From Dimorphilus gyrociliatus (taxonomy: Eukaryota > Animalia > Annelida), in the NCBI GenBank assembly GCA_904063045.1, contig CAJFCJ010000014.1:248001-312000 (forward strand): 64,000 nt of DNA, given 5' to 3'. Below the pieces are notes generated by a model. The model worked only from the letters and a program-made list of their open reading frames with translations, did not search any database and had not been told where the DNA came from. This document shows, piece after piece, positions 17,383 through 45,377 of this stretch (position 1 is its first letter; each line of letters opens with the position of its first letter). Made by a program: the position numbers and the translations under genes.

Positions 17383-20300
17383 TCATATGTTTTCTTCTTC
17401 CTCAATTACTTTTTTAATAAAGTCATATTGACTTGCAGTTTGGGTAAAAATAGATTTGCCATATTTACATCCTCTAATACCCCAGCTAACTACTCCACTT
17501 GCTGTCCATTTCCCCCCGATTTTACAGGATAGAGGACCACCAGAATCGCCCTGAAAGAAAAACATTAAAAAACTTATAACAAATGATATACTTTTAAAAG
17601 ATAATTTCATTTACCTGGCAAGATTGAGACTGTGGAGTTTCAACACCTTTTCCACAGATTGTTTGTGGATAATTTAACATGAATAATCCTTTAGTTTTAT
17701 TTGCCATGTCACTGGCGCAACTCTCCTGTGTTTCCAACTGAATTTTAGTTTTCATTAGAAAATCAGACAGTTGTTTATCTAAAATAGAAAATATACTAAT
17801 ATAAATTGATGGTCTTTTCTCTTTAAATATTTTAATTAGCCTACTCTGTCCATTTAAATATCCAAAACCGGAGACGTAACAATCGTAATCTTCATTACCA
17901 GTTAGAGGTTGATTATTCAAACAAGCAGTGTTGATTGAATCAGACATTATAACAGCTTTATTCAATTTTAATATGGCTAAGTCATTCTCTATAAAAACAC
18001 TTTTATAGTCCGGATGGATAAAGGCTTTAGAGACTTTATAAGTCTTTCCACCATAGATGTAAACAGAGCCCAAACTTATGGATATTTTTTCGTTTCTAAT
18101 AAAAAGATTTCTTAATTACTACAACATTCTATTGGCTATTCTCATTAATTCAAATAGAAAAACTAACGGTTTTATGCAATGAGCAGCTGTAAGTATAAAT
18201 CGTTCATGAATAAGAATTCCACCACATTTAATAAACGTAAAATACGTAAAATATGTATCGAGTGATAGTCGCACCTGATTGTAAGATATGTAATTATATA
18301 TGAACTTTAACTTTGAAATATTTATTAAAGAGTTTAGATTACCTGCCATGGAAATTCACTAGCGTCAGTAACCCTTTTTCCTCCAACAATGAACGAACTA
18401 CTACTTCTTACGCCGCAATTTTTGTGATTGAGACCAACAGTAACCTGAATTTTATCTGAAAGATGAAAAACACATTTATTCGTTTTATAAACATCAATAG
18501 AAAGTGTTTTACGAGGTTTTCGAGTGGTAAGTGAAGGTGGAGCAGTTGGTTTTGTTAATATATTTCTTAAGTTATTTTTTATAGTATCCTCTATCCATCT
18601 ATAATATTTGCCAGTTTGTGTATATAATATTAGATTCTTTCTATATAATTCGTTCGATTTCTGCAGGATACCTCCCACAAACCATTTTCCGTTAACTTTA
18701 CAAGTTAGAGGAGATCCTGTATCGTACTGGAAAAAAGGATAATGCACAGATAATAAGTTTTTATCTTAACATAATACTATTTTAAGAACTTTACAAAGAT
18801 AGTTTGGCTTTGACGAGTATTAAGAGTTTTTCCGCAAAGTATTTCTGGATAAGAACGATAATAACTATAGAAAGCGTTCTTGCATATCAATTCAGTTACA
18901 AGGTCTTGTTGCAGTTTTTGAAGTTGGTGAGTATAACCTTTTGGCTCTGTAATTAAAGGATTGCGATTAAAATATCTACAATTCTCTTTCATAATCCTTA
19001 CGCAATTTTCCAAAACTTGAAACGTAGCATTCGTAATCTTCTTTTCCATCAAGATTCTCTTCAATTAAGCAAGCGGGTTTAATCTTATCGCTCATTGTAA
19101 TCTTCTTTTCCAACTTTAAGAGAGCTATATTATTCTTATAGTATAAACTGCTATATTGTGGGTGTTGTATAAATTTTACGCCTCTGTAAATTTTTCCCCT
19201 ATATCTCTTAGAAGATCCAACAACAATTTCGTATTCTGAATTTCTAGGATTGAACGAATAGAACACATAGACTAAAGTGTAAAGATTGAGAATAACTTAC
19301 AAGTCAGCTTGACATTCCGCAGCAGTTAGGATAAATTCTTCATGAACAATTATTCCTTCGCATGTACTGCTTTTCGTGTCACTTTCCCCTATAAACCATA
19401 CCTTTAAATGCGTTTATTATAGTATTTTATACTATTTTTGAAGTAGTGCATAGAAATTTATCAAACCTGCCATGGAAAATCAGTTATAGAAGTATTTACT
19501 CCTTTAATATTACCGCTCCTACCGCAATTCTGTTTATTGATGCCTGAAAAGAAGCCGAAAGAATACATTTTTATAGTATAGTCGTTTAAATAAAAATGGT
19601 AAACAGCGTTCACCTATTGCTGGTGTACTGCAAGGTCCTTCGGTTATTTTAATCTCATCGAAAGCGATATCTCCAGTATATCCTTTATAAAAAAATCCAT
19701 AGAACAGCAATTTTTGAATCTGTTTACAACAATCACAACACAATAAAGTATGTTTGTAATGTTCTGTACTTACAACTATTTCAGAGGAAGTGCCATTGAT
19801 TGTATGTGAAAATATCATCCATTCTAATCCTTGATTTCCTTGTTTTTCGAGAAGAGTTTCATTTTTAACTATTGTCCTTTTATCTTTATCTAAACTGATC
19901 AAAGAGACAAGAAATCGACCCATATCCTCTCCATACATATTATATATAAATGATAGGCAAACTTTTCTATTGAAATAAACAATTGGAGATTCTAGAATAG
20001 CGAATGCTGACGTATCAGCATAGGTAGCTTCGAAATAGACAAAAGGACCATAATATGTCTCTTGCGGCCCAGTATTAAGTGAAGGTGTTTTTGTACCAAT
20101 CAACCATTGAAAAGCTTTCTTTCCATGTGAATAATTACAAAATCCTTTGTCAAATGAACATTCCAATTTTTCAGGAGAATATTCTATTGTTCAATCAATC
20201 AATCAATGGAAAATTAGGAGAGAAAAAGTGAGAAATTACTTCTAATACTTACTATTAACTATAGGTTTTGCAGTTGAAATTGAATCAGTTTTTGTGCTCG

Positions 20301-21821
20301 ATCTACCTGATAAAATCGTTTATGTTATTATTTCAACATGTAGAAGAGTATCAAACGCGAAATTATTTACTGTCCGCTGTAGGTCTTATAGGTGGTATTG
20401 TTCGTTCTGGTCTTGAATAACAGTTTACCAGTCGAAGTTCATCGATGGCGAATGAGTAAATACTGAACCATTTACATTCTTGTTCAAAAACGATCTATAA
20501 ACAATTTTTCATACATTTAATCCTTTGTAAATCTGTTTTAATATAAAGATTACACTATAGTTTCCAACAGGTAGATCAACTATTCTCTTAATCCATCCAC
20601 TTCCACTTGAGCTAGGATTATCCAACAGCAGGTTTTCTTCATTCCCCTTACCTTTCGTATAGATTTTTATACCGTTTGCAACATTATTGCCACTTATAGA
20701 GTAAAAGAATGAAAATGTACATCCTGTCATATCGATTGTTAATAGAGAACTCTGGAAGCTCCTAATGTCTCCATTCTTACAAAAATACGAGCTAATTTGT
20801 GCAAAATGTCCTTTAAATGATATACAATATATTAATTTGAGTGAGCGATGGAAATTATATAACTACCTGTTTTGCTTACATCCTGATAAGGTGGCAAATA
20901 GTGTATAGTAGGATCGTTTATTTTCCAGCCACTTCCGTTACTTTGCAAAGCATATTGACAGAAATTTTTCGAATCAAAGTTACAATCCAACTTTTGTTGT
21001 AGCAGCAGTTTCCAAGGAGCTACAGTTACTTTATCATGTAGAACTACGACGAATAGAAGAAATTAATCTCTTTCATTTAAATAAATTATATTGGAAACAT
21101 ACCAGAACAATTGTTTATTTCAATGTTGTCAATAGCCACTATCGAATCATTTTGAGCGACTTTTTCAGCTTTGATAATGAACTATGAAAGGTATAGTACA
21201 GTATAGTATATATAAATTTATATATTCTTCAAACCTGATCGAGATCCTTGGGAAACGTCAGTATCCGTGTAGTCCATTTGTTGTAATCTGAATAACTTAC
21301 TGAAAAGACTTGAACGTTTGAAACACGGTTATTCTTCATTTTATAAATGTATAGTTTGTCAACGAAAGAAGATATGAGAAGATTGAATTTTAAACATAGA
21401 GTATTCCATTTAAAGCTTTTAAAATTGAATTTCCTTGAATATATATAAGTTTCTTTGATAATTGAACTATTTAGTTTAGCGTACATGCATTTTCCTGAAA
21501 GAATTGTTATTATTATTACTATCGTCATTAAAGAGCGTTAATTCATTGAGTAAGAATGTAACCTGTATTGTTTACAGGCGATGGCTTTAGCTCTCCTCTA
21601 CGAAATTTGTAAATCATTAAATCATTTGGTACAAATGATTTGAATGAACAATCATTGCTCTCAAAGTTACAGCGCCAAGAAACATCCGAATCTGCCAATA
21701 ACCCTGAAAGATAATGACTCATCAATAATATAATAATTAGATAAGCAAATAACAACTAACCTTCGGCGATGGAAAGCAGATATATAAAATATAGAAGAAA
21801 AAGCGCTAATCTTCCATTCAT
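17383..21821 (-). CDS. Secreted 3xMAM + inactive serine-protease-like domain + active S1 serine protease (MAM gene A)
   Basis: Signal peptide [21 protein letters not shown] and three MAM domains (~21700-19610). Protease domain 1 has TAAEC/NNIALL/YDTGSP (triad lost). Domain 2 has [25 protein letters not shown] and VSWG (triad intact). Confidence 0.85.
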
Positions 21822-22552
21822 TTCAAAAAGAAGCTGTTTTATGCTTTTGAAGGAGAAAAAGTAAATTTTCTTTAAAGATACTCTCCTATCAGCAGTTTTA
21901 TAAAAAATGTAAAATATCTACTTTCTTTTTTAAGAATGAGCTTTCTAATATGAATAAATTAGCATAATAATATGAATATTTAAATGAGTCATAAAAACCA
22001 AAAAAGGAAAGTAAAAACAATTAGCTCTAGTAAGTGCAACGTCAATGACTTTGAAGAAGCTGTTTAAGATTGTCCTTGATTTAAGGCTTAAACGAATGAT
22101 CACCAATGAAAAAACGGTAATGTAATGATACGAGGGATGAGTTTCCAATTAAGGGAGAACTTAATAACATTCCTAGCAGTCATTAAACCCTTATTACTAT
22201 TATTCAACATTATTAATAGTAGTATATACTTGTCAATGAACTGTAATACAGTCAGGAAAAACTAAATAATCGCAAATATCTACTGTGATCGCAGTTCTTC
22301 TACTCATAGAATAGTTGACGATTTCGCAATATACAGCATTCAACCATTTCGTAGGCTACATAGAACATTCTCACTATTCAAAGATTTATATATCATTGTA
22401 ATTCAAATATTGTATTTCTTAGCTGAATTTTTTTTCAAATATGTGTCACATCAAAGAACAGTGAAGCGCATCGATTTGTGATATGATTAACCAAGCCGAG
22501 TAAAATAGAAAAAAAAGAAAATGTCCTCTTTAAATGCCAAGGTAAAACTACT

Positions 22553-25343
22553 TTAGACGAGACATGACCCGTCGTTAATTTGAATTCCATCAAAAGAAAT
22601 ATCACCTCTGTAACCTCTGCCATAGAGACCCATGAAATTCAATTTTATGTGCTGTATCAACAAAAAATAGTTCTTTATCAGTTTCTTTTAAGGAAAACAA
22701 CAAATGTTTAATACTTACAGCTATTTGTGGAGAATTACGTATAGTATATGAAAATCTAATCCATTCCATTCCTTTATTTCCAATTTCGTTCAGAATTGTT
22801 TCATTTCTAATTATTCTACTATCAGTTTGATCAAAAGTGATAAGGGAGACGAGAAATCGACCGGTATGACTTCCATACATATTATACATAAATGATAAGC
22901 AAGTCTCTTTATCGAAATAGACAATGGGAGACTCGAGTAGGGAAAAATAGCCTCTAGTTGCCGTAGTTGCTTCAAAATACACAAAATTTCCAGAATATGG
23001 TGCTTGCGGACCAGTGTCTCTAGAAGGAGTTTCTCTGCCAATTAACCATTGATAGTTTGTAGAATTTTGGTAATAATTACAAAAGTCTTGCTCGAATTGA
23101 CACTCCAATAACTTTGGAGAAGGTCCTGAACAAGATAACAGTTGAACAAGTGTAAATTTTACATTCTCTTGAATATCATCAACAATACTATACCTGGTCT
23201 TACTGTTACACTAGACGTTTCTCTGGTTGACCTAGCAGACCCAGGACAGGAACCATAAGAAATGGTAACTTCATCAAACGAAACATCACCTTTATATCCT
23301 CTTCCGTAGAAAGCATAAAAATTTAATTTTCTAGGCTATATCAGTAATTAAAAAACAAAGTCCTAGTTCTTTCATTAGTCTCAATGCTTTAAACTTACTC
23401 TTATTTGTGGATAATCATTAATTGTATGTGAAAATCGAATCCAATCAGTTCCTTTATTTCCAATTTCGTTAAGAATTGTTTCATTTCCGATTATTCTATT
23501 TTCATTTTGATCAAGAGTGATAAGAGAAACGAGAAATCGACCAATATGACTTCCATGCATATTATACATAAATGATAAGCAAGTCTCTTTATCGAAATAG
23601 ACAACGGGAGACTCTAGTAGGGAAAAATAGCCTCTAGTTGCCGTAGTTGCTTCAAAATACACAAAATTTCCAGAATATGGTACTTGTGGACCAGTATTGC
23701 TAGAGGGAGTTTCTCTGCCGATTACCCATTGATGAGTTTGAGTACTTTGATAATAATTACAAAAGTCTTGCTCGAATCGACACTCTAAGAGTGTTGGTGA
23801 ATTTCCTGTTGTAAGCAATCAAAATTATAAGGAATAGAAAATATCTAAAAGGTAAATTCTAACTGTTTGGAGTTGGTCTTGGAGTTGAGAGAGAAGGTGA
23901 TTGGCAGTTATGTGTAGTTATTTCATCAACAGCAATATGAGATAACGAAAGAATAGTACATTTCCCTTCGAAAATCAACTGAAAAAAGCATCAGAACAAG
24001 TTCAATTTATCTAAGAATGTAATTAATTAATGAGATGAATTTACCTCATATTCTCCAATTGGTAGGCTAATGTCTTCGGTAAGCCAACTTTCTCCTTGAG
24101 GACCACGCTTTTCTACTAATACTTGTTGTAGATTTTCTTTATTGTTTGTATAAACTGTTAAAGTTCCAACATTTTCGCCAGACATGTGATAGTAGAATGA
24201 AAGTTTGCATCTAGGGTTGGTTACTATTATTGAAGAACTTTTTAAATAAACCCTATCTCCTTCCCAACAAACGAATGGTCCAGAATGCAAATAATATCCT
24301 ATAATCATTACTTCTCTATCAGATTTATGTTATTAAAATTGATACTGATATATATATCTTACCATTTTTGCTTACATCTTGCTCAGGCAATCCGTAGAAA
24401 GAGTGTTGTGGGTTGCTTACTGTCCAAGCGTAATTATCAATTCGATTCTGAGAGCTTCTTAGCAATTCATACTGGCAAGTAGTGCTCGAGTCGAAATTAC
24501 ATTGTAATATTGAATCTATATTCGTTGACGATGGAGGTGTTGAAGATGAATCAGCTGTTAAAAGAAAGCTTATGCATGAATGCTATTAGATGAAAATATC
24601 TATATAATTAACCATAACAATCATTAAATTCCATATTATCGATAGCTATTATTGAAGTCGCCGAATTTTTACGAGAGCTCTTAATCATGATCTAAAGAAT
24701 TTTAGTATTTTCATTCAAAAGTCTTTGTTTAACTGATTACAATATTGAATTTTATAATCAAACCTCGTCTACACTCTGCGAAAGATAATCCGTCTTTTCT
24801 ATCCATTTAAATATTTCATGTGAATATTTCATTGAAAAAGCTCTTTGCTTAACAATTTGATAATCCTTTAGGAAGAAGACAAACAATTCATCTTGACCAT
24901 TACTCATGAGAATATTGAATTTGAAGCATAATTTCCCAATATTTCTTGGAATATTCAATTTACTCGAAAACAAGTAGGCCTCTTCCAGATGAGAATTAGT
25001 CTTGCGTGCGTACATACAATTTTCTAAAACAGGAATAAATGAATAATGCTTTCACCCTACAATAGAATCTTTTTTAAGATAAATCGTCTACTTACCAGCC
25101 CTTTCTGGTGTTTTTAGATTTCCTCTTTCAAACTTGTAAACCTGGAATTGATCTGGTACATTTGATTGAAATGAACAATCATCATTTTCAAAAGTACACT
25201 TCCAATAGATCCTCTGACCTAATTTTTCAATATCAAATGAATGTACATATTAAATAAATGGATATGTCATTAAACTAACCAAAGACAATTGAAAGTATAG
25301 TCGTGATGAATATGAAAATGGTCAATTTAGTCTTTTCACTCAT
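22553..25343 (-). CDS. Secreted 4xMAM protein without protease domain (MAM gene B)
   Basis: Signal peptide MSEKTKLTIFIFITTILSIVFG at 25343 and four MAM domains. The last exon, HIKLNFMGLYGRGYRGDISFDGIQINDGSCLV-stop, ends at 22553. Confidence 0.82.
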
Positions 25344-25951
25344 AATCCTTTCAAAAGTATGAAATAACTATGAAGCTTTATGATATAAGGAAAGATATAC
25401 GTAGAGTATCTGTGAAGTTCTCTTGAAATGAAGGCTAATTTCGTTAAAAATAGCTTTTTATAGCTAACAAAAGAACTCTTTCATTCCTTACGGTTAACTA
25501 TTAAAAAACAGGAAGATTAACCATTGAATATAATAATCATTCGTACTTTCGTTTTCTTAAATTATATTTAGAAAGCCGCTGGTTAATTGCTTCATTGAAT
25601 CTATCAAAACGGTTAGACCGTGACAGTCCTTTTAAATAATTGTCAAAAACATATGTTGAAACCAACTCATTTTAAAGTATTCATCTCAGGGAATTTCCCT
25701 ACTATCAGCCAACCAATTTAATACTATATCACTAAGGCACATTCGTATCAATCGTAATCAGCTTAAAAAACATCCTACAATAGACTATTGTTAGTATTCT
25801 ATCCATTATTCCCTATTACCTTCTTATAGATGTTTGTGAATGTGATTTATGAATGTTTTAATAAAAATATAGTGTATTCAAAATTTTTGAATTATTACAG
25901 AATTTTCTTTTCCGATAATACAAATATTACTTTTGCAAATGATAATGTCTA

Positions 25952-28900
25952 TCAATAACACTGCTCTTCTCTTTTAATTATATCAGTTATCCATTTATAG
26001 TGAGGTGCAGCCTGTGCAAAAACTGTAATACCACCTTTACATCCGGCCAAACCCCAACTTACAACTCCGAATGAGTGCCATTTATCATTTCGTTTACAGG
26101 ACAAAGGACCACCGGAATCGCCCTAGAAGTAAAAACAAATGATGCTATGTATAAAACGGCTAAAGAACCAAGGAGATTTCTACCTTGCAAGCCTGTGAAC
26201 TGCTGGAGGCAACTCCTATTCCGCATACCATTTCAGGATATGTTGCAGTTGTAAAGGTGTATTGCATTAAGGTAGACTTGCAGCTTCTTTCAGTAACAAT
26301 ATTTTGCTTAGTCTTCATTAAAACAGAACTTGTTGGAGATCCATCTAATAATTGTCAATATTTATTTTGTCTTCATATTAGAAAGATGCTACTGCTTACC
26401 TGCTCCACTTGTCCTGCCGAATCCAGAAACGTGACATTCGTAGCCCTCGCTACCATCTAAAATCTTGTCGGGGAGACATGCGGTGTTGATTTTATCTGTC
26501 ATTTTGACCGTAGAATTCAACTTAATGATTGCAATATCATTAAGATGTCTTGTAGGTTTGTTATATTGCTCATGTTTGAATGCGACAGAGCTTTTGTAAA
26601 CTGTTCCTTTGTATTTATTTAAAGATCCCAAGAAAATGCTATAATCTGCAGAGCTAGGAACAATTCACATATATTACTCCAAAAATTATATAAGAATATA
26701 AAAAAAACCATCTTACTCTTTGATACAATGAGCTGCTGTTAAGATGAATCTTTCGTGGATTAAAACTCCACCGCATAGATAATAATCCCCAGCAACAGCA
26801 ATGGAAACACTTGCCTAGATTTTAAAAAGAGAATAAATAGTAAAATGATCAATGGATCTTTTAGTATTAATTCATATATGCCGCTTTTCCTCTAAATTTA
26901 CCTGCCAAGGAAATTCGCCATCTAAAGCTCTCTCTCCTTGAATTATAAAGGACGAACTGAGTCTCTTGCCACAATTTGCATGATTTACACCAACTTTTAC
27001 AAATGCAGTTTCTATAGTGAAATTTTCGGTTTAAATTCAAAGATATCTATTTTTGAATATAAGAAAGACATACCATTCTTAACCTTATGGCATTCACCGT
27101 TCTTCAAGACGAAATCATCAAGTGTAATTACAGATACATTCATCCTTTTGGTAGTTGAAAGTTCAATACGGAATTGTTCAACATCACTTTCCAAATCGAT
27201 ATTTACTGGCAGATTTGAATTTTGATTCATGCATAATTTACTACTTTCCTCCATCAATTCCGAGATTTTCCTGCATGCGTAAAAATCACTATAGAACATG
27301 TTTTACATTGAAAGAAACATGTCTACCTGAAAGAACTCGATCCTCTCTTCTTTACGTGGAAATTCAGCAGTGGATCTCCTTGACTCTGGATCATATTTGA
27401 TTTCGTTTTCTTTGCTAGTTTTAGCGATAAACACTTTTTCGAATTGAATGATGTGATTAGAGGAGACTGAATCGATATTGCAGATGTTGCCGATTTGGCT
27501 TCAACACCTCCGATGTGCATAACTTTATCTGTAGGAAATCAGAGTCACGGGTATTAATGGAAAAGAGACAAAGTCGTCTATGAACTGTCCTACTTGAGGA
27601 TTCGTCATCCCGTCTAGTCCACTCCAGGGGACTCATTAAGTCTTGAACAAGCGTATAGCCACACATATGATTCTGGAAATTGCAGTTGACCGATGAGGCT
27701 AATTTTGAAAATGACGTTTAAATGAGAAAAACGAGTTTAGATTCGTTCAATTCGTATAAATTGCATAGAATACTGACTTTGGCTGGCAACTGGAAATATC
27801 ACTCTATCGTTTGATTTGCAAGTTCCCGAGCTAATTATCAAATTATCAATTGCTACATCACTTTCAAACGTATAACCTCTAACTGCCTTGAATACTATTT
27901 TATAGCTAGTGAATGATGTTTGAATTTCTTGATTTATCCAAGAATATCCTTTATTTCCTTTTTCGCTTTTTACGTGATGTAAGACACCATTATTCTCTAA
28001 ATAAATGAGCAGTGAACCTCCTGTGTCATCATGCGAAGTTAACATGTGATAGTGGAATGAGATACAGCTGACTCCATTCATTTTAAAAAGGCTAGACTTC
28101 ATAACTGCAACACTGGAAACTGGTGCGCTGGTAGCTTCAGTATAGATGTAATAATCTAGCCAAAAAAGAAGTCACATTAAAGATTTGACGCTTTTTAGGT
28201 ATAAAAACGAAAATCTCGGTAATTATCTTACTTCCTTCAAAAGCGTATTCAGGTCCAGTTCCAATTGATGGGGTTCTAGTATTTATTCTTTTAAAAGCCC
28301 ATATTGAATTGTCGGAAGTCATAGAAAATCCACAATCGTCATTTTCAAATGTACACTTATTTACGGCACTATCGTTGCATTTTCCTTGTAATAATGATAT
28401 GTCATCAATTGCAATATCTCCTCTATAATCCCCATCAGAGGTTGCTTTAAGAATGATCTTTAAATAAATATACATTATGGATTGTTTGTAAATTTTCCAA
28501 AAGATGAACTTATGTAAATCTTACTTGATTGATATTATCAGAGGACTTTAGCGTCATAAGAAGACGATTCCAGCGGTCTCCTATGCTGGTATCTTGATTA
28601 AATAATAACTTTCTACCAGACGATTTAGTATTTACAAAAATCTCGAATATTCCAATTGATAAAGAGGATCCATACATATGATAATAAAGTTCCATACAAT
28701 AATCTTTATTATTTAGGTTCACGAGTGGAGATTTCAATTCAGAATAATCATTGCTCTTACTGCCGGTTGCTTCGACGTATATATAGTAACCTTGAATACC
28801 TTTCGTATGATCCACGCTTGGTCCAGTGTTGATTGATGGTGTTGATCCAGTCTCTCGCTTCCAAATGTACGTATTTGATGAGATAGACGCAGTTGCTTTC

Positions 28901-31900
28901 CACAAACACATATTTGTCTCAAAATCACATTTTAGATTATCTATTGAACGTAGAATTATGAAGATTAACGAAAATTAGACGAAAGATATGAAAGATTACA
29001 AACCAACAGAAACGCTCGAAGACGTTGGCCTAACTGTTGGGGAAGTTAACAAATTCGCTTGCGTTGAAGTTGAATGTGGCAATTTATCATTACAAGATTG
29101 AAATCGAACGCGAACTTCATCAAACGATATATCTCCTCTGTATCCGCTTCCATAGAAACCGGTAAAGAACAACTTTCTGAACTGCGTAATAATGGAAAAT
29201 GATTAATAATTAACTCTTTATCTTCACTTTTTACAATAGAATATGGAAAATAAACAAACCGTTTGTTTGTTTTCATTATGTATTGTATAAGAAACAATTT
29301 TCCATACGTTTCCCTTATTTCCACTTTCGTCAAGAATTGTTTCATTCTTTAATACTGTTCTTTCATCTTGGCCATAAGTAACTAGAGATACTACAAAACG
29401 ACCCATATCTTTTCCATACATATGATAAGCAAACGACAAACAACACGTTGAATTGAAATTAATTATAGCAGATTCCAAAATGGCTATATTGGATCGAGAT
29501 GAGGATGTTGCCTCGTAGTAGACAAATTTTCCTGAATGTGGGGCTTGAGGACCAGTTGAACTAGACAGGGTGTAATCTGCAATCCTCCACGAATATGTTG
29601 CTTTTGGACTTGTATAATATTCGCAAAAATCTCGCTCAAAGCTACATTCCAGCATTTTTGGTGACATCGCTTTAGGTTTTTAAGGAGAGAAAATAGATTC
29701 AAAATAAGGTTTTAAGCAATAAAATATATAATATAATATTTAATTCATTACGTGACATAGTAGGCTTTAACGTAGAAGAAGGCGAACGGCAAAAATCAAC
29801 AGAGATATTATCAATAGCCATGTCTCCTTTGAAGGATCTTTTGCATATTCCGCTAAAAATGAGCTTTAAAGATATTCTTTTATTACTGGTAACAAATTAA
29901 TTTTTAATAAAACCATTTATTACTTGATATTGTCCAGGTGGAAGTAACATTGTCTTTTTTATCCATTGGAGACCTTGATTGCCACTTTTCGTCATTAAAG
30001 TAGAAAATGTCTTGGACGTTATATGATAAATGCCAACATTAAACATCCCCATATCGGATCCATACATATGATAATAGAACGATAGTTGGCAAGTTAAGTG
30101 TTTCAGTGTTATAACAGGACTAGTAAAGTTAGTTACATCCCCTTGTTTACAAAAGGAAGCTTCGGTATATAGAAAGTATCCTAGAAAATTCAATTATTCT
30201 ATTAGAACGGAATATTTTCTAATGGGAAAAGTGATTTTTACCAGTTTTGCTTACATCTTCTCTTGGTCCAGTATCTATTGATATCCTCCGATTACTTAGA
30301 GACCAAACAAAAGTATTACTCGACAATGATTTAGTTATCTTGTATTGTCCATAATCAAATGAGTCGAAATTCGTATTTAATATCTTAGCCAAGTTTGACT
30401 TGTTGGTTATTGCTGTTTGAGTTGTAGAGGTAGTTGACCGAGTTGTAAAGGCAGCTGGCACAGTTGTAGAACTAGGCATAGTTGGTGTGGTCATTCGGGT
30501 TTTAGTAGTAGATGAATGAAAACAATCGTGAACAGTTATTTTATCAATTGCAACGTCTCCACGATATCCAGTTCCACAAGTTGCAATAAAAGTTAACTAG
30601 AAACATAATAGAGTTTCATTGAGAAGTAAAATTATAGTAATTCATTGATAATTAACAAATATTATCTAACCTGGTAATAGCCAGCATTTTGAATTATAAG
30701 CGTCTCTTTTATCCAACGATCCGTTAGTAAATCGTCTTTTAGGATAGATTTGGACTTAAAAAGTCCAAAAATATCGCTTGCAAGCACCTCCAAACCTCCA
30801 ATTTGACTTCCGTACATATTATAAAAGAATGAAATACACGTTGAAGGGGTAAAAAAAAAAGGGCTCGTTAAATTGGTTACATCATTCCTGTTGCATGACG
30901 ACGCTTCAGCAAATGCAAATTTACCTGTAGTTCATTATATAAAACGTCTATAGTTTGTAATTGTTGAATATATGTAAATAATGTTGAACCTATTCCATCA
31001 ACAGGTTTGGACGGTCCTGTGTTCCATGACGGTGTCTCACTACCAGTTGTCCAAAAATAACTTCTGGCGCTGGTGGAAGAATTTGTAAATGAACAAAAGT
31101 CTCCTTTATCGAATGAACAAGGTATATTTTCTATTTTTGTTGTATGTGGAGTAGTAGGCTTCAATGTAGGAGTGGGAGTAGCAACTAAGAAAAACACGAT
31201 GATTAATATAGAAAGTTCTGTATACAGTATATTTCCACGTACAAAAACAATCGTACAACTCTATATCGTCTATAGCTAACGTATCCTGACTTCCAATATA
31301 TCTTTCGGCTTTTATAACTAACTATTAAATGAATAAATTAAAAATGGTTGAATTATTTTTTTTTAAAAAAAAAAAGGAAAGAAAACCTGATCGATAGGAT
31401 CGTTGAAGGTAATGGAATGTTGTTGCCATTTTTGTGTTTGGGAAGGATTTGCGTAAGAACCATCTCTCGATACAACACTTCCATTTATAAGACCATAAAT
31501 TTGAATTTGATCTGCATTATCACCTATCCAAGTGTAATATCTTAAACATAATGTTCCCATTTCCTTTGGTTTGTTGAATGTAGGCGAAAATAAAAAGGCT
31601 TCCTGATCGTATAGATAACGGGGCTTAGCGTACATGTATTTACCTATAGGGAATACATAATAGAACCGAATAGCTTATATCTTAAGGTTTGTTTCTTATA
31701 CTACCATTTGGTCCTGTTCTATCTGAAATATTTGTTGAACCTCTTTGAAATTTGTACAAAGAGATACCTTGATGAATATTTGAAGTAAATCGACAATCAT
31801 CCTTGTTAAAATCGCATTTCCACAAATGACTTTTACCTTAATTTCAATAAGATATTAATTACATAATACATGATAATAAAAAAAAATAAGACAAACCAGA

Positions 31901-31966
31901 TATCAACGAAGGAGCGAGGAAGGATAAGATAAGGATAAAGTAACAGTTGACTTGAAATTTGATCAT
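25952..31966 (-). CDS. Secreted 7xMAM + active S1 serine protease (MAM gene C)
   Basis: Signal peptide MIKFQVNCYFILILSFLAPSLISG and seven MAM domains (the 7th degenerate) with Thr/Ser/Pro-rich linkers. Protease CGKRLSSSF-IIQG, TAAHC, LNDIAIIKL, GDSGGP, VSWG. Confidence 0.85.
27091..27967. repeat. 877-bp near-identical direct repeat, copy 1 (in MAM gene C)
   Basis: Line-by-line comparison with 40591-41467 shows 3 mismatches (27110, 27551, 27732). Confidence 0.95.
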
Positions 31967-32618: not shown

Positions 32619-32621
<3 letters not shown>

Positions 32622-32654: not shown

Positions 32655-32657
<3 letters not shown>

Positions 32658-33213: not shown

Positions 33214-33860
33214 TATTAGGATCAACCTGAAAGTTTTAACCGTTTCCCTGTAATTTTAAAATAGTACATTGTAGGCCTATGTTATCATTATTAATAAAAA
33301 GTGAATTCATTAATGCAAGTTATTTCAATCGATATTCACAGGCAACTGAAAGCTTTTTTTGGAAACATGGGTATTCTATCATGAACCATTGACTAAAAGA
33401 GCTTCTTTAGAGTATCATACAAAGTTTTCTCCACTACCAAAAAAGGTTAAGACAGGTAAGTCTGCAGACAAACTGATGGCATGTGTGTTTTGGGACAGGG
33501 GATATCTTAAAACAACTGGATGGGTAGTCTTGCCTCATCCAGCCTACAGCCCAGACCTGGTGCCATCAGACTATTATCTTTTCTGGAAATTAAAGGACCA
33601 TCTTCGGGGTGAAATATATGAGAATGATGAGGAATTGCAAAATGCAGTAAAAGCATTTTTCATTTTTCGCTTGAATACTTCGCCAAAGGAATTGATATGC
33701 TTCCCGCCAGGTGGCAAACATGCACTGACAATAATGGGGAATTCAAAGCTATATAGATATATCTAAGACATTAATTAATATTTATGACTAAACATATTAT
33801 GTAATTTTCTTTGTTAGCAGTAAGACACAAACGGGTAAAACTTTCAGGTTGATCCTAATA
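33214..33860 (+). mobile_element. Internally deleted, non-autonomous mariner (Tc1/mariner DD34D) element
   Basis: 32-bp TIRs TATTAGGATCAACCTGAAAGTTTTA(A/C)CCGTTT with 1 mismatch and TA target duplications at 33212-13 and 33861-62. Transposase remnants ETWVFYHEP, LMACVFWD and HPAYSPDLVPSDYYLFWKLKDHLRG. The HTH region and the second catalytic Asp region are missing. Confidence 0.92.
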
Positions 33861-35020: not shown

Positions 35021-38000
35021 TCAAAGTTCTCTCTTACTACTCATTGCTTTGATAGTTGCAATTATAAAATTCAAATAGCTGCCTCTTAGTTGATTAAATG
35101 TTGATATGTTTCTTTTGCTTTTTCTATAATTCAATAATAATCCGGAAATTGTCCATTTTTCATTGATTTTGCAAGATAGAATAGCTTTGTTGGAATCCTA
35201 GTATAAAATAAGATGACTCAATATTACTGTTATAGAAGAGAATCTTTATTAAAATACCTTTTGTGAGTCTTCTGAACTGTTAAGAGGTAAGGAGCAAATC
35301 TTTGGAAAATGATTACTACTCTTTGTAGTTCCATTCAAGGTCAAGTTCAATAATGATAAGCAATACTTTTCATCTAATAATTGAACTTTTTCCACACTTG
35401 GTATATCTTTACTTGAATTGCTAATACCAAAACTAGAAGTAATGCAATTATAACTTGTACCATTAGTGATTGTTGCTCCATTCAAACAAATAGTATTTAT
35501 TTTATCATCTATTGATACCTTATTATCTAATTTAATTAGAGCAATACTCTCGTTAGAAATTTGGGGATAATTGGGATGAAAGAATACAGATTTCCCATTA
35601 AATCGTTTATAAGAAACTGAACGATTCAAGCCCAAGATAACTTGAAAATGATTTTGTCTAGGAATAAAAAACAACAACAATTCAAAGACTTTCTTTCTTA
35701 TTTCGTAACGATAATAGAGAAAGAAAGATTTTCTCCAGACTTACTTATCAATACATTTTGCGTCTGTTAGAACAAAACTTGAATGAATTAGAATTCCTTC
35801 GCAATGATTCTCTGAACGTCTATTTTTAGAATAAATATTCACCTGAAAGGGAATAGAGAACTAATTAGAAATACATAAAGTGTTTATTAAAGTGTTCTTT
35901 TTATTTAACCTGCCATGGAAATTCCTCTATGGCGGAAGATGATGATGATGCTACTGTTGAGGAGGAGAAAAATGAAAAAGCTGCAGAAGAATTATAAAAG
36001 ATTTTCCCACAGTCGGGTTGATTTAGACCTATTTTATTCAAGTCTGTATAATAATAAAAGGGTATGATTATAGTTTTTATAGTTAAAAAATGCTTAAAGT
36101 GTAGTATATATAGATATATTTTACTGGGCGATCATAAAGTCACATCACTTTTTTTTACAACAGATATAAAAAAATAAATACACAACACACAGCAATAGAT
36201 TTCCTGTTGTTGTTATTCTTTTCAATTTCCTTATTGAAAGAAGAACAGAGGAGCTTTTTTTCAACATTTTTTTTAAATTATATTGTATATTGAACATGCT
36301 TAAATCTAGATCTATTGTGCGAAATCTGTAAAGTTTTTTAAAGAGTTTTAACCTAAGTCATCGAAGGAGGATGTAGAACTTTTTTCGTATTTAAATGGAT
36401 TATTCTCGAAGGGCGATTCGCATTGACTATCGTTATTATTACAACCAATTCCATTATCTATAAATGATATTTTGTTATTAAAATTTCCATTCCTTATTCA
36501 CTTACCTCTTAGTGGATAATATATAAACTTTTCCCTACAATTGCCCAGCTGTTCGTTAATGAAATCTAAACCAATTCGATTTTGATTAGATAATCCTTCT
36601 ACTGCTTTAAAAGTTATCTGAAATATTTCCTTGTCTTTATTATTAATTGTTAATCGGTAATCGTTATCAATTTAGCTTTTAAACCTCGTAGAATGGTACC
36701 GATATCTCGATCTGTTGTTTTTTCCATTCGTTACTTGTAGACTTTAACATAGTAACCAATTGATAAGTACCGGTAATACTTTCTCTTAAGTAAACATTCA
36801 ATTTACTACTACTAGCAGTAGGTGTAGAAGGTTTTTGAATGAAATAATAGAATGAAATACACGCAATTCCTCTTAGAGTTCGAAATCCTGCTGATAATAC
36901 AGCAATTCGAGAGAATGACGATTGCGGTGAAGGAACTATTCCTAGGTAATAATCTGTTGACCCGATATAAATTTGAACGTATGAACCTCTATTCAGAGAG
37001 TTTAATTAGTTTAATTACCCCCGTGATAAGGTTGAATAGGTCCACCTCTATCACTTTGAATCCTTGCAAATTCCCACGATTTATGGTAGGAGAATAGTTG
37101 ATAATTACACAAATCTACCTCGAAAGAACATCGTTGAAGAAGACTAACATCTTGACAATTGCCTTCTTCAACATATATATTATCGATAGCTATATCTCCT
37201 TTATAAAATCCTTCCGAAGTTGCCTTGATAACAATCTGGTCAATTTGTTTGTTAGATTTTAAATCTATTGTACGTTGAATCCAAAAATTTCCCATACTTT
37301 TATTGTTTTTAAAGAGAATATCCTTTAAAGTACCTTCTTTAAAAGTCATAATTTCCAATTGTCCAATTCTCTCTAAAGATCCAAACATATGATAGGAAAA
37401 TATTAGGCAATAATCCCTCCTATTCATATTAAATATTGGCGATTTTAGCTCGGAATAGAAACCTCGTTGACTATTTGACGATTCGACGAATATATAATAT
37501 CTGTTGCCATACAGAGAATCTTTAGTTGGTCCTGTACCTTGAGAAGGGGTTTCCTCGTTCAATCTGGTCCATATGTAGTTATTGAAAAAGTAATCTGGAC
37601 TTTTATTTACGGTCCAACGACAGAAATCCACCTCAAAATTGCAATTTAATTGTTCATCTATAGGGTAGAGGAAAAAGGAAAAGAGGATCAGGAACAGAAG
37701 AGAAAGAAACGTTTAGTTCAATACTTACTTGGGCTTTTTGTTTGTTCTAAACAACGTCCTTTAACAACTGATACATCATCAAGAGCTATATCACCCTTAT
37801 AACAACCAGCCGATATTGCCTGAATTACAATCTATAGAGAAAGGAACGATAATCTTTCTTTTTAATAATCTTTAATCATGTTAAACTTGCTTGATCGATA
37901 TTATCTTTTGGTTTTAAATTAATTGAAATTTCATTCCAACTATCTCCGATATTTGACGAATTTGAATAGAAAAGTATACGCTTTTCTTCATTACTATAAC

Positions 38001-39239
38001 CGGAAATTGATAATTTACCAATTGAAATATTCGAACCAAACATATAAATGTATAATCTTAAGCAATAGTTAAAGTTATTCATTTTGAATATAGGCGATTT
38101 TAATTCGGCTATATGATTTCTTTTACTAAATGACGCTTCAACGAAAACGTATTTTCCGGTTTTATTATTAAAAGTATGATCATTACTCGGTCCAGTATTT
38201 AACGAAGGTGTTTTCCCACTATTTAACATCCATTTATAATCATTATCAATCGACTTTGGATAATGAGTTGTCATCCAATAACAAAAGTCCTTTTCGAAAG
38301 TACAATTCAGATATTCTAGGAAGAATATTGAGACATATATGTCAGATAAAGAAGGAATATAATAGACTGACCGTCGGGTGGTTTCAACGGTAAAGCAAAC
38401 GGAGGTTTAGTACCTTCGATCTCTCCTTTGGATATGATAAAGATATCAATTGTATATATATATATATATGTATATATATATAAATACAAAAGATGGAAAT
38501 ACCTTCACAATCATTTATTTCAATATCATCAATTGCGATTACACCCACATTTGTTTTGGATTTCTTTATATAAAACATCACCTAAAAGAGGAGGATAGTG
38601 AGAGATTGAATTCATCTCATTTTTGCTCTTTATAGCCTACTTGATCAAATTCTTTTGTCGCTTCAATAATTGAACTTTTCCAAATCTTCTTACGATTATT
38701 CGAACCATATATTAACTTACTTTGAGTAATATGTCCGTGTCGCAATAGAAAAACAAATAACTCACTCTTATACTGATCAATCATATGATAGTGTTGAACG
38801 CATACTCTGTTCATTTTGTTTCCATTTAGAAAGATGATTGGTGAAATAATAAAAGTTTCATGAATATCATTAACTGTATTAACAGTATGCATATAATTTC
38901 CTGAAAGTTATTCAATTTAATTAGCCAATCATCTAATTGCAATAAAAAGATATTACAATTACCATTATTATTATTCCGATCGTCTAGAGAGCTTAACGAA
39001 CCTCTCGTTAATTTGAATATATGAACTCTCGCCGGAATATTGGAATTGAACGAACAATCGTTCAATTCAAAATCACATTTCCAAAATGTATCTTTACCTT
39101 TTGAAAATGAAATTCTTACATTTAATAAGTTATATATAACTTCTTTAAACTTACAAACAACTCCTAGAAATAGGAAATAAGTAGAGAAAAGTAACAGTGA
39201 TTTCAGATATAAACACATAACCGGAGAGAAGCATACCAT
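35021..39239 (-). CDS. Secreted 4xMAM + inactive serine-protease-like domain (MAM gene D)
   Basis: Signal peptide MVCFSPVMCLYLKSLLLFSTYFLFLGVVC and four MAM domains (~39110-36540), linked through a phase-1 intron (~36356-36043) to DLNKIGLNQPDCGK...EFPWQ. The triad positions read TDAKC, ESIALIKL and DSNKAILSC (all lost). Confidence 0.78.
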
Positions 39240-39602
39240 AAATCGCTTGGATATAAAGTGTCAAGTGTACGACCTCCCCCGTAGGTACTATAAAAAATTT
39301 AATGACTTCCTAATTCTTCTTTTTTCTACTTTCATATAGAGTGTGTTACAATGTTTTTCTCGTTATAACAAACATTGTCTACTGTTCAGGTTTTAACCAT
39401 TAACCATTCAGTAAGTGTAAATACTATTTAGTAACACTGTACTTTCCATTCATTTATATTCTTCCTTTATCCTTTAAGCTATTATTGGCTAATTGATAAT
39501 TTATTTTACTACATGATTCATTGTATTTTATAGTTAAATGGTTATATTTAAAAATTGTTATGAAACAATGAAGAATTCGTAAAAATGCCGACGTTGTTCT
39601 TT

Positions 39603-42600
39603 TTAATCTTTTGAATTTATTATCTTCTTTATCCATTCGTAATTTGATCCAATTTCATTGTAGAATGTCATACCAGTTGTACAATTTTCTAGGTCAGTCG
39701 TTTTAATTCCTACCGTTAGCCATCTACCATTAATTCTACACGATAGAGGACTACCAGAATCAATCTGAATATATTTAGTCTTAGGTTTATGTTCCATTTA
39801 ATCAATTCAATCCATTTACATTACCTTGCAAGCTTCAATACTTTTACCGCAAATTAAATTTGAATATTTCCTTATAGAGTCGTCTCTATCGTTTGTACAT
39901 TGCTCTTTTGTATTTAATTTTAACTTTCTTCTCTTAAATAATAGAGATTTCCTTGATTTTCCTGAAAATACCACGTATTAATCATACTATTACAGTATTA
40001 CGATTAATCATATTCTACTTGTTTCAAAACTGGTAGTAAAACATTCCAAATATTCGACATTTAATAGACTTTGTTGGCTCAGATAATCTAGGTCTATTGT
40101 ATTTATCATTTCTACGATTTCGTCCAATTTTATAATGGCAATACTTTTCAAATTTTTTAGGAACTTGGGATAATTTGAACTGGTTTTAAAAACCCTAATC
40201 CCTTTTCTAGATTCTCCTCCAATACTTCCTAAACTACCAAAAGTGATAAGGTAGTCTGCATTTCTATAATTAAACAAATCTATACATAATTATACGGTTA
40301 TTTTTGTTCTATAAAGTATTAACTCTTTTAGACAAACGGCCGACGTTAATACGTATCTCTCATTAACGACGATTCCATTACAAGTTGTATTGATATTGTC
40401 CGCTGAAATTAGTATTGAAACCTGCCAACTAGGTATTTCATCCTCTAAATTCATTTTATCTTTAACCAAACCAAATAGAGTTTTATCAACTTTACCGCAA
40501 TTAGGATCATCTTTACCTGTAGATTGTATCATTATATCAATTAATCTTTATTCTAAAACGCTACTTTAAATATCACCTGGTTCATTAGAACATTCACCGT
40601 TCTTCAAGATGAAATCATCAAGTGTAATTACAGATACATTCATCCTTTTGGTAGTTGAAAGTTCAATACGGAATTGTTCAACATCACTTTCCAAATCGAT
40701 ATTTACTGGCAGATTTGAATTTTGATTCATGCATAATTTACTACTTTCCTCCATCAATTCCGAGATTTTCCTGCATGCGTAAAAATCACTATAGAACATG
40801 TTTTACATTGAAAGAAACATGTCTACCTGAAAGAACTCGATCCTCTCTTCTTTACGTGGAAATTCAGCAGTGGATCTCCTTGACTCTGGATCATATTTGA
40901 TTTCGTTTTCTTTGCTAGTTTTAGCGATAAACACTTTTTCGAATTGAATGATGTGATTAGAGGAGACTGAATCGATATTGCAGATGTTGCCGATTTGGCT
41001 TCAACACCTCCGATGTGCATAACTTTATCTGTAGGAAATCAGAGTCACGGTTATTAATGGAAAAGAGACAAAGTCGTCTATGAACTGTCCTACTTGAGGA
41101 TTCGTCATCCCGTCTAGTCCACTCCAGGGGACTCATTAAGTCTTGAACAAGCGTATAGCCACACATATGATTCTGGAAATTGCAGTTGACCGATGAGGCT
41201 AATTTTGAAAATGACGTTTAAATGAGAAAAAAGAGTTTAGATTCGTTCAATTCGTATAAATTGCATAGAATACTGACTTTGGCTGGCAACTGGAAATATC
41301 ACTCTATCGTTTGATTTGCAAGTTCCCGAGCTAATTATCAAATTATCAATTGCTACATCACTTTCAAACGTATAACCTCTAACTGCCTTGAATACTATTT
41401 TATAGCTAGTGAATGATGTTTGAATTTCTTGATTTATCCAAGAATATCCTTTATTTCCTTTTTCGCTCATTACTTGATTAAATTGTCCGTTTGAATCAAG
41501 ATATACAATGAATGTGCTACCCAACTCATCTTCAGAAGTTAGCATATGATAATTGATCGATACGCAACTTACTTCATTTACTGTTATCAGTGTTGAAGAA
41601 AGAATGGCTACGCTTGATACAGGCGCCCTTGTTGCTTCAGTAAACATGTAGAATCCTTTAGAATTATAAAATATTAATATTTTTCATTATAGAGAAGAAT
41701 GACTTCATATTTATCTTACTTCCTTCATATGCATTTTGAGGACCAGTTCCAGTGGATAACGTCTTTCCACTCCATCGTGCAAAATTCCAAATTGAATTAT
41801 CGAAGGATTTTACAAAGTTACAATCATCCAATTCAAATGAACAACCACCTGAAAGTTTTAATCCAGCGTCCTTGCAGTCTCCTTTAAAGATGTATACGTC
41901 ATCCAGAGCGATATCTCCTCTATAATGCCCATAAGACGTTGCTTTTAAAATAAGCTGTAATTGAAAAATAGCACGTCCATTTAGATAAGACTTAAAGTAA
42001 AATTAAAATAAATCGTCTATTCTTTGTTACTTGATAATAATTTTCAGACTTTTTCAATTGAATTCTTAAACGATTCCAATTATCTCCCCGACTATGTTCA
42101 ATCTTAGAAAGTACTTTTAACATGGAAGTTTTATGAAGGCCTATTATCTCAAGTTTTCCAATTGAAGAATTTGATCCAAACATATGATAGTATAATTCCA
42201 GACAAAAATCTTTATTATTCATATTTAATAAGGGAGATTTTAATTCAGTATAGTAATTTCGTTCGCTTAAAGTCGCTTCTACATATGTATAAAAGCCTTG
42301 AGCATTACCCATTGTACGGTCTACGTTTGGTCCTGTCGAACTCGACGGAGTTGATCCAGAATGTCGGGTCCAGATGTAAGAATTATTTTCATTTGCAGGA
42401 TACTTAGTTGTCGTCCACATACAAGTATCAGATTCAAAATCACAAGTTAGTTTATCTGGTAATATTTCATAATTAAATAATGATAATTGATTGAAAAGGA
42501 AAGAAGATTACAAACCAGGCGATATGGCTGTACCCGAAGGTCTTGTTTGCATAGTTGAAGGCATTGCCGGTATTTCTGTTGTCGTTGTTGTTGATAACGT

Positions 42601-45377
42601 TTGATAACAAGGTTGAAATTGAATATCAACTTGATCAAAAGCAATATCGCCCCTATAACCATTTCCATAGAAACCGGTAAAGAACAATTTTCTCAACTGC
42701 ATAGATTAACATCCATTATGTTATTTCTTTACAATATTAAAAAGATGAACTAACCGTCGGCCTACTTGAATTTTCATTTTGTATTGTATAAGAAAAGTTA
42801 TTCCAGATGTTTCCCTTATTTCCACTTTCGTCAAGAATTGTTTCATTCTTTAGTATTGTTCTTTCATCGTTGTCATAGATAACTAGGGACACTACGAAAC
42901 GACCCATATTGGTTCCGAACATGTGATAGACAAATGATAAGCAACATGTTTCTTCGAAATAAACCATTGGAGATTCGAGGCTAGTTACTCTACTGGAATT
43001 AGCTTTCGAAGACTCGTAGTAAGCAAAATTTCCAGAATATCGAATTTGAGGACCAGTTCCCGTAGAAGGTGTTTTTGAAGCTATATACCATGGGAAAGTC
43101 GATTGTAAGCTTGGATAATAGGCGCAAAAGTCACTTTCAAAATCACAATTTAACTTTTTAGGAGATGTTCCTTCAGAGAAGAAAGTCATAATATTTCTAT
43201 TATAATAACGAAACAATGCCTACTAATCGGTTTATCTTCTGGAGATCTTTGGCAATTTATAACTTTAATATCATCAATAGCAATATCACCTTGGTAACTG
43301 GTTAAACAAACTCCGCTAAAAACAACCTAAATTGACATTTCAAAATTGTGGTTTGTTTAGTTGCCAAATACAGCAAAGAGAAAGTAAAGAGTTACTCGAT
43401 ATTGTCCAATTGGTAGGCTAACGACGTTCTTCATCCAGCTATCACCTTGCGAACCACTCTTTGAAAATAAAATGGAATATCTTCCAGTTTTTTCGAGAGT
43501 TGCAATTGTAAAAGTTCCTATATCTTTACCAAACATGTGATAAGAGAATGATAATTGGCAATCTAAATTATCATTTGTAAAAATAGGGCTTGTAAAATTA
43601 GTGAAATCTCCACTTTTGCAACCGGAAGCTTCAGTATATAAAAAGTAACCTAAAAGAAATGAGTATTAAAGAGAGAGAGAGAGAGAGAGAATGAGTTTGA
43701 TTTAGAAAATACTATTACCGTTCTTAGAAACATCTTCAATTGGTCCTGTGCCAGAAGATAATCGTCTATTTTGTAAAGTCCATATATAGAAACTATCAAA
43801 TCGAGATTTAATTGTTTCGTATAGGCAAATTGTTTGTAAATCAAAATTGCAATTTAATAATGAGTTGTATGGTAAATTTACTGGTAATTTTGTAGAAGTT
43901 GTAGGTAAAGGTATTGTAGTTGCGTCTGCTGCTTCTGTTGTTATTTCAATTGGATTAGTTTCCGTTGTATACGATTCGGAAGAACAGTAATTGAAAGCTA
44001 TTTCATCAATTGCAATATCTCCTCGGAATCCTCCTCCGCAAGTTGCTAAAAAAATCAACTAATTTTCCCTTCGTTAATCCTACTCTTTACTCATTCTATG
44101 TGGTGATAATGGATAATTGATTAAGATACTTACTTGATAAGTCCCTTGAACATTCAATTGAACTGTATGTTTTTTCCATTCATCTTTATTTAAATTATTG
44201 ACACGGAAAACAAGATTTTCATTCGTCTCTTCAAAATTCCTCACATAGACTTCCAATTTTCCTATATCTCTTCCATACAAAAGATAATAGAATGATACAC
44301 AGCCAGGAATGGTAATTTTAAAAGTAGAACTAGTAAGATTAGTTATAGAATTTCCAATACATTTCGAAGATTCGGTAAAAGCAAACTTTCCTTTTGAAGT
44401 AGGGGGGTTAAAAAGAACATTATTAAACTACTAAACCTGTTACCTGTTCCGTTAAAAGGTTTCGATGGTCCTGTTAAGGATGACGGAGTCTTAGAATCAA
44501 TTGTCCAATAGTAGCCACTCTTTTCATTCGAAGTATTTTTATAATAGCAAAAATCATTGGAATCGAATGAACAGCTAATTAAATTCGTAATGTCGTTCTC
44601 TTGTTCATCTGTTGACATTAATAATAGAAACAAAACTAATTCAATTCCAACGTACCATCGCAATAGTATAGTCTTATATCGTCGATAGCAATGATGTCTC
44701 TACTGGTCGGTGATCTTTTGGCTTTAACCGCGATCTATTCAGTTTTTAAAAGAGTAATTTCTATATAAAATATCATCTTTGAAGCTACTTTCAGTTTCTT
44801 ACTTGATCAATAGACACATTGAAAATCTTAACCTTCTTTTGCCATTTATTAATGGTTGATGATAAATGCCCCAACGTTTCATCTCTGAATTGAACAATTC
44901 CCTTATCTATACCGTAAAATTGTATAAGGTCTTTATCGCCGCCAATCCAATAATGAAATTCAAGACATTTCCTTTTGAATTTCGTGTCAAATTTAATAAT
45001 AGGTGAATAAATGTAAGTTTCAAGGTCATTTGAATGATCAAATTTCGCATAAAGGAACTTTCCTAGAAGAGATTTTTTTTATTGTTATTGTTAAGAATTA
45101 AAGAGATTCTGGTAAAGGAATAAAATTACCATTACGGCCTTGAAGATGAGAACTATGCAGAGAGCCTCTTTGAAATTTATAAAGAGAGATACCTTGGGGA
45201 ACGCTAGTTGAAAAGGAACAGTAATCTTCCTCGAAATTACACTCCCAAATAGGATTTTCAACTAATATTTACAGAGATAAAGATTATTTTAATACAGAGA
45301 TAAGTCAACAGGAACAAACCTGAGATTATAGGGCGAATAAGAATCGACAAAATAGATAATCCAATAAGCATTCTCAT
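39603..45377 (-). CDS. Secreted 7xMAM + inactive serine-protease-like domain (MAM gene E)
   Basis: Signal peptide MRMLIGLSILSILIRPIISG and seven MAM domains colinear with gene C at ~13.5 kb offset. The protease-like domain has TSAVC (His lost), KSIAIIKL (Asp lost) and IDSGSP. Confidence 0.83.
40591..41467. repeat. 877-bp near-identical direct repeat, copy 2 (in MAM gene E)
   Basis: Matches 27091-27967 with 3 mismatches, introns included. Confidence 0.95.

Follow-up and report, generated by a model that had tools for sequence, protein, structure and literature searches.

An apparently lineage-specific family of MAM-array serine proteases and pseudoproteases clustered in the genome of Dimorphilus gyrociliatus

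What does an annelid do with a row of adjacent genes that couple chains of MAM domains to S1 serine protease domains, when most of those proteases have lost their catalytic residues? The question is raised by a 64,000-nucleotide stretch of the Dimorphilus gyrociliatus genome (contig CAJFCJ010000014.1, positions 248,001 to 312,000, assembly GCA_904063045.1; hereafter the window). An earlier note on this DNA had described a tandem cluster of secreted MAM-array proteases and pseudoproteases and proposed that they may work as a cascade or multi-subunit complex. A coherent, secreted-looking family mixing active proteases, pseudoproteases and MAM-only genes was borne out by our analysis. On balance, we favour the reading that these are secreted binding proteins, specific to one lineage, for which a protease fold serves as the scaffold, accompanied by two zymogens that are still active and non-tryptic (from gene C and from the second S1 of gene A). 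The family so far appears specific to D. gyrociliatus or its close kin, with the window as its main genomic cluster, and its genes arose by tandem duplication, loss and gain of whole MAM modules, and gene conversion.

Gene models and MAM modules

The window is AT-rich animal DNA (~31% GC) with short introns. Spliced models were built with a dynamic programme over codons and splice sites and were then corrected manually by comparison with paralogous domains. Only local scripts worked on the joined models; Pfam and the other database, family and fold tools were given single exon pieces. On the minus strand, 17383-45377 resolves into five intact, intron-rich genes placed head-to-tail (A to E), and a sixth (F) lies at 1752-3835. 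All six are encoded on this strand by complete open reading frames (ORFs) with introns of 38-97 nt, and the ends of the A and E models fall exactly on the limits given in the earlier note. Intergenic gaps within A to E measure 364-732 bp, except for 3 kb between C and D. The six genes are as follows.

Gene A, 17383-21821, minus strand: 1085 aa, 20 exons; putative signal peptide, 3 MAM, dead S1, linker, active S1
Gene B, 22553-25343, minus strand: 713 aa; putative signal peptide and 4 MAM, without a protease
Gene C, 25952-31966, minus strand: 1544 aa, 22 exons; putative signal peptide, 6 clear MAM, a degenerate seventh MAM-like domain, active S1
Gene D, 35021-39239, minus strand: about 1083 aa; putative signal peptide, 4 MAM, short linker, dead S1
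Gene E, 39603-45377, minus strand: 1512 aa, 21 exons; putative signal peptide, 6 MAM and a seventh MAM-like domain, dead S1
Gene F, 1752-3835, minus strand: 543 aa; putative signal peptide and 3 MAM, without a protease

Every protein from A to F opens with a hydrophobic, signal-like peptide (judged by eye), and the first MAM domain begins only a few residues after it. A C-terminal hydrophobic tail is absent from all six, the chains stopping just after the S1 domain or the last MAM. The complete spliced ORFs confirm the earlier description of five head-to-tail genes, each with its own signal-like peptide, and of a sixth gene with three MAM domains. A single giant gene was ruled out, as each unit has its own start, signal-like peptide and stop. 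Equally, the possibility that MAM2 and MAM4 of gene D are broken was rejected, because use of one GC-AG intron within MAM2 (37832-37890, donor GCAAGT) and of a weak GTTTAA donor within MAM4 (36683-36684) restores both domains whole.

Pfam detected MAM (PF00629) in stop-free exon pieces of every gene, at up to 100 bits and mostly at 28-100 bits; the first-position MAM of each gene scored below or near the cut-off on exon pieces (13-25 bits). A local MAM hidden Markov model (HMM) counted 3 domains in A, 4 in B, 7 in C, 4 in D, 7 in E and 3 in F, the same numbers as in the earlier note. For C and E, the count of seven holds with the local HMM, but the seventh domain is degenerate and gave no Pfam match on its own exon pieces. 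This domain type aligned with our own MAM alignment at 90% probability in hhalign, over its N-terminal half, and its homologue on another contig (C305) reached 30.3 bits with Pfam MAM, over the cut-off. We therefore take the seventh domain to be, in both C and E, a MAM that has diverged strongly. A seventh domain in gene D was ruled out, as no trace of one was found.

MAM1-3 of gene A, 19630-21671, minus strand: located with the local HMM; Pfam MAM 78 and 28 bits on exon pieces
Seventh domain of gene C, 26998-27799, minus strand: strongly diverged, read as MAM-derived from hhalign and the C305 homologue

In the MAM tree, the first MAM domains of all genes group together (support 99), and the remaining domains fall into positional types. 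A and B are built as 1-3-4, with type 4 present twice in B; D, F and the C305 locus are built as 1-5-5-6; and C and E carry types 1 to 7. The domains of F are of the same types as the first three of D. All the genes thus follow a single modular plan and differ by the loss or duplication of whole modules. Within gene B, MAM3 and MAM4 (22703-23002 and 23383-23682) are 89% identical at the DNA level, which points to a recent duplication of a single module inside the gene. The linkers between MAM domains are rich in Ser, Thr and Pro.

Genes C and E also share a gene-conversion tract, with 3 mismatches in 877 bp (99.7% identity) and sharp edges, against flanks of only about 60-75% identity. Its dS is 0.009, compared with about 1 for the remainder of the pair. 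The tract ends about 17 bp before the end of the last exon of the seventh domain, ahead of the protease.

Gene-conversion tract, copy in C, 27091-27967, unstranded: end of MAM6 and seventh domain, introns included
Gene-conversion tract, copy in E, 40591-41467, unstranded: partner of the copy in C

Active and dead S1 domains

Exon pieces of A, C, D and E matched Pfam Trypsin (PF00089) at 22-50 bits (cut-off 20.6). Within the window, the catalytic triad His57/Asp102/Ser195 is kept only in C and in the second S1 domain of A, both of which also keep Gly193 (oxyanion hole), Asp194 and Ser214-Trp215-Gly216.

A second S1, triad intact, 17386-18405, minus strand: H 18190, D 17986, S 17550; Phe then IVGG; residue 189 Gln
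C S1, triad intact, 25955-26970, minus strand: H 26739, D 26541, S 26122; Phe then IIQG; residue 189 Gln; Cys122 present
A first S1, dead, 18553-19535, minus strand: H57E at 19326, D102N at 19134, S195T at 18726; no IVGG site
D S1, dead, minus strand: H57K at 35767, D102S at 35551, S195N near 35260
E S1, dead, minus strand: H57V at 40346, D102S at 40148; Ser195 kept at 39764; Cys122 lost

These residues agree with the earlier calls of two active domains (A second, C) and three dead ones (A first, D, E), with the addition that E retains Ser195. E has a degenerate activation site, and neither D nor the first S1 of A retains one.

Residue 189, which forms the floor of the specificity pocket, is Gln across the family except in E, where it is Glu. 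In solved structures its counterparts are Asp189 of TMPRSS6, whose structure matches the S1 domain best, and Ser189 of chymotrypsin C. Because of the Gln, the active enzymes are not expected to be trypsin-like in specificity. The residue preceding the cleavage site is Phe, Leu or Tyr, which would fit a chymotrypsin-like activator, possibly a member of the family itself. Loss of cysteines in the dead domains goes by pairs: Cys191 and Cys220 are both missing from D, from the first S1 of A and from the first S1 of P0151, a paralogue of A described below, and Cys42 and Cys58 are both missing from a second paralogue, P0071. Such pairwise loss of disulfide partners is as expected of a fold under constraint.

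The family within and beyond the D. gyrociliatus genome

Six-frame scans of the assembly found MAM and Trypsin together on six contigs besides the window (C37, C47, C90, C118, C229 and C305). There are thus at least six MAM-S1 loci beyond the window, and every readable S1 domain there is dead; the C118 model was too broken and was left out of this residue reading. In draft models, the loci outside the window carry 4 MAM, a seventh-type domain and S1, while P0071 (C47, DgyrCDS14558) has 2 MAM and S1. C90, C118, C229 and C305 are small contigs with closely related copies of the 4-MAM, seventh-type and dead S1 arrangement. C118 and C229 look nearly identical, with C90 close to them, and may be haplotigs or very recent duplicates.

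The paralogue P0151 (CAD5126263.1, DgyrCDS14425) maps exactly, over 18 exons, to C37:87656-92439 of the same assembly as the window. It is 64% identical to gene A, with the same architecture and with most exon lengths equal, and this match of exon lengths supports the modelling method. DgyrCDS14426 comes from this locus too and runs on into the intron that follows exon 14. Both S1 domains of P0151 are dead; the second has H57Y and S195G and keeps Asp102. As its counterpart in gene A is intact, loss of activity recurs within the family. Five dead domains outside the window nevertheless keep a site of the II/IVGG type together with Asp194 (the second S1 of P0151, C305, C229, C90 and P0071).

The earlier note had suggested a phylogeny of the protease domains. 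In our maximum likelihood tree, a single clade (100/100) unites the ten MAM-linked S1 domains that were modelled; it excludes the 24 nearest database S1 domains and also a gene of the worm itself, a conventional enteropeptidase-like mosaic with two MAM domains, LDLa repeats, SRCR and an active S1 (contig C13:652300-655252). Inside the clade, C branches first, followed by the second S1 domains of A and P0151 and then by a clade (96/96) that contains every fully dead domain. The two S1 domains of A therefore fall in different subclades and are not recent duplicates of each other.

The earlier proposal also depended on the dead-protease genes being under selection. The dead domains are under purifying selection, as measured by the Nei-Gojobori method with bootstrap. 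Between A and P0151 (dS about 0.5-0.7), dN/dS is 0.42 (95% confidence interval (CI) 0.27-0.66) for the dead first S1, 0.41 (95% CI 0.32-0.54) for the MAM domains, 0.61 (95% CI 0.41-0.87) for the second S1 and about 0.9 for the linkers; between C305 and C90, the dead S1 gives 0.29 (95% CI 0.17-0.44). Since the dead first S1 of A is common to a paralogue at this dS, it has been kept since that duplication.

Other domains were sought as well. On full-length P0151, Pfam found only MAM and Trypsin (Trypsin at 194 bits, in two stretches), and in C and E all residues are assigned to MAM, S1 or short Ser/Thr/Pro linkers, which leaves no room for a further domain. No membrane anchor, SEA, LDLa, CUB or SRCR was seen in the family, as judged from Pfam on the full-length paralogues and from the C and E models. 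A clip domain was absent from full-length P0151, P0072 and P0071, where Pfam gave only MAM, Trypsin and DUF1986, and astacin had no match in any Pfam scan of exon pieces or full-length paralogues.

A phmmer search of 1.8 billion representative proteins with the C protease exon did not find an identical protein. Among its best 150 matches, MAM occurs only in two Dimorphilus paralogues and in one nemertean mosaic (P0055; SRCR, 14 LDLa, 3 MAM and 3 Trypsin). Word-index searches for public models of the window genes returned only the paralogue or unrelated proteins, and a literature search found no paper on these Dimorphilus genes. Three short fragments from public sequencing runs are 46-64% identical to the C protease and resemble this family more than any other, so relatives probably exist in other samples. 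The nearest ESM Atlas clusters are of the polyserase or ovochymase type; none of them is a large cluster of MAM and Trypsin only, and the sole MAM-bearing one is enteropeptidase and also has CUB. We treat this result as no more than a lead.

Several known systems resemble the worm family in part. Arthropod clip-domain proteases include active enzymes alongside dead homologues that are retained and functional; the worm proteins differ in having no clip domain, in their activation sites and in that dead domains are the majority. Polyserases and ovochymases carry several S1 domains per chain, some inactive, as do gene A and P0151 with their tandem S1 pairs of which one or both are inactive, but the worm proteins have neither CUB nor a membrane anchor. 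MAM arrays are found in zonadhesin, MAMDC4/MALRD1 and meprin, with mucin-like linkers in zonadhesin, and MAM acts there in adhesion and oligomerisation. These multi-MAM proteins bear VWD, LDLa or astacin rather than S1, and unlike them, B and F are MAM-only relatives of protease-bearing genes.

What enteropeptidase and other type II transmembrane serine proteases (TMPRSS15, TMPRSS6) share with the worm family is a C-terminal S1 domain, activated by cleavage, that a disulfide holds to a MAM-bearing heavy chain; in the worm, both the cleavage and the tether are predicted from sequence. The worm proteins differ in having no membrane anchor, SEA, LDLa, CUB or SRCR, in having Phe rather than Arg or Lys before the cleavage site and in having Gln rather than Asp at residue 189. 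The worm also has a separate gene of the enteropeptidase type, on C13, outside the family clade.

Another comparison is with cnidarians. A study of the Nematostella 'tryptome' (Babonis et al. 2019, PMC6767649) describes a cnidarian 'trypsin-MAM clade' that is expanded in anthozoans, and it also records non-catalytic trypsin domains. Like the worm proteins, the cnidarian ones are secreted S1 proteases whose fusion partner is solely or mostly MAM, and they too have expanded within one lineage. In the worm, 3-7 ordered MAM domains stand ahead of the protease, and most of the protease domains are dead. The fusion of MAM to S1 in the worm was probably independent, because its S1 domains form their own clade in a tree of the family, the C13 gene and the 24 nearest database S1 domains. 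The earlier note knew of no characterised family with 3-7 MAM domains fused to S1 and without LDLa, CUB or SRCR. The absence of these three domains stands, on the Pfam result for P0151 and the full residue accounting in C and E, whereas the pairing of trypsin with MAM was already known (PMC6767649). Since trypsin-MAM proteases have been described in cnidarians, the family represents a variant, specific to one lineage, of the mosaic S1 proteases and pseudoproteases and not a new kind of molecular system.

Binding, proteolysis or both

As the family is far larger than the cluster and mostly dead, binding rather than proteolysis appears to be its main business, and the dead-protease members probably work mainly as binders. 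On the reading that we favour, an N-terminal chain of positionally distinct MAM domains would carry the C-terminal S1 domain in a secreted, soluble protein. C and A would be zymogens, cut after Phe directly before IIQG or IVGG, and after the cut the S1 domain would stay tied to the MAM chain by a disulfide to Cys122 from the Cys of a Cys-Gly that lies immediately upstream of the cleavage site. With Gln at residue 189, the pockets of C and A would be non-tryptic. B and F, which are MAM-only, together with D, E and the first S1 of A, would bind without catalysis; the MAM chains may serve recognition or self-association, and the dead S1 domains, like those of other serine-protease homologues, may offer a surface for binding. 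These proteins would act outside cells, most likely in secretions of gland or gut or in humoral defence.

A number of points weigh against this reading. The signal peptides, the cleavage after Phe, the pocket specificity and the disulfide tether are all read from sequence only. The gene models are our own, except for the annotated P0151, and the stretch of gene D at 35.9-36.5 kb is poorly modelled and uncertain. A word search for transcript-derived protein fragments of the window genes gave only a Pomacea MAM protein. With dN/dS fairly high at 0.3-0.6, constraint is only moderate, and the D and E branches of the S1 tree are very long (2.7 and 2.3), so these two domains may be partly relaxed.

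The long branches of D and E, together with their odd amino-acid composition, the loss of Cys122 in E and the lack of a seventh domain in D, could also mean that these are duplicated proteases of the ordinary digestive or gland kind, the dead copies being decaying leftovers without a function of their own. In a single-cell table of the cnidarian study (PMC6767649), one trypsin-MAM gene of Nematostella is linked to clusters of gland cells, which agrees with such an origin. We nevertheless consider this explanation unlikely. All the dead genes hold complete ORFs over 16-21 exons, dN/dS of the dead domains is well under 1 and under that of the linkers, disulfide partners have been lost in pairs, and the dead first S1 of A has persisted since the duplication that separated A from its paralogue.

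We are similarly doubtful, and to the same degree, of the cascade or multi-subunit complex, modelled on arthropod clip-domain systems, in which C and A would by cleavage activate one another as well as the dead paralogues, the latter acting as cofactors or decoys docked through MAM domains. Self- or cross-activation would be chemically plausible, given the aromatic or hydrophobic residue (Phe, Leu or Tyr) before the site in the active and several of the dead proteins and the lack of Asp189 in the active enzymes. Dead paralogues outside the window retain a site of the II/IVGG type with Asp194, but in the window itself the canonical site is missing from all three dead domains (A first, D, E). 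The near-identical protease-adjacent domain of C and E (99.7% at the DNA level) could let an enzyme and its dead twin bind the same partner, yet recent gene conversion is neutral as to function. The genes do lie 0.4-0.7 kb apart in one orientation, save for the 3-kb C-D gap. However, the family is without a clip domain, and a ratio of dead to active domains of about 9 to 2 is unlike a stepwise cascade.

A more elaborate version seems to us less probable still. Here the family would be a self-contained extracellular switch: C and the second S1 of A would cut sites of the form Phe/Leu/Tyr-Ile-Ile/Val-Gly-Gly and flip the pseudoproteases into a binding shape, as in clip-domain serine protease homologues and HGF, and the MAM chains would assemble the enzyme, its dead twin E and the adaptors B and F on a target surface.

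Least probable as a separate explanation is humoral immune recognition, with fast-evolving MAM chains binding patterns or glycans and the protease or pseudoprotease as the effector or signalling part; tandem duplication, gene conversion, the moderately high dN/dS (0.3-0.6) and immune-type neighbours with NACHT (10.5-12.3 kb), PAN and PARP catalytic (14.9-15.5 kb) domains agree with it, but gene neighbourhood is weak evidence in animals, and the idea overlaps the binding-protein reading rather than excluding it.

Read as binding proteins on a protease scaffold, these genes offer a clean natural case of a protease family that has mostly turned pseudoenzyme while under selection. In C and E, an enzyme and its dead twin stand side by side with sequence exchange ongoing, and the positional types 1 to 7 display the ordered shuffling of MAM modules. 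With about a dozen genes in a laboratory annelid whose genome measures 78 Mb, the family is a tractable set for studying the roles of dead proteases and MAM chains outside vertebrates and arthropods.

The neighbouring DNA holds further genes. Between F and A, two adjoining long ORFs of 599 and 956 aa occupy 7667-12327 (minus strand); the one at 10531-12327 matches NACHT (30 bits), and that at 7667-10534 looks leucine-rich-repeat-like by eye and had no Pfam match. Between the NACHT gene and A, 13462-16826 (minus strand) holds an ORF that matches PAN/apple at 39.5 bits, and a PARP catalytic domain that scores 52.7 bits. In the C-D gap, a 138-aa ORF (33350-33763, plus strand) may be what is left of a transposon; it carries a motif, …SPDL.PSDY.LF…, that we take to be that of mariner/Tc1 transposase C-termini, and it had no Pfam match at E <= 0.001. 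Downstream of the cluster lie a class-III aminotransferase (49436-51227, minus strand), a p66/GATA zinc-finger gene (52135-53490, minus strand) and a CRTC gene (TORC_N, 55242-55568, plus strand).

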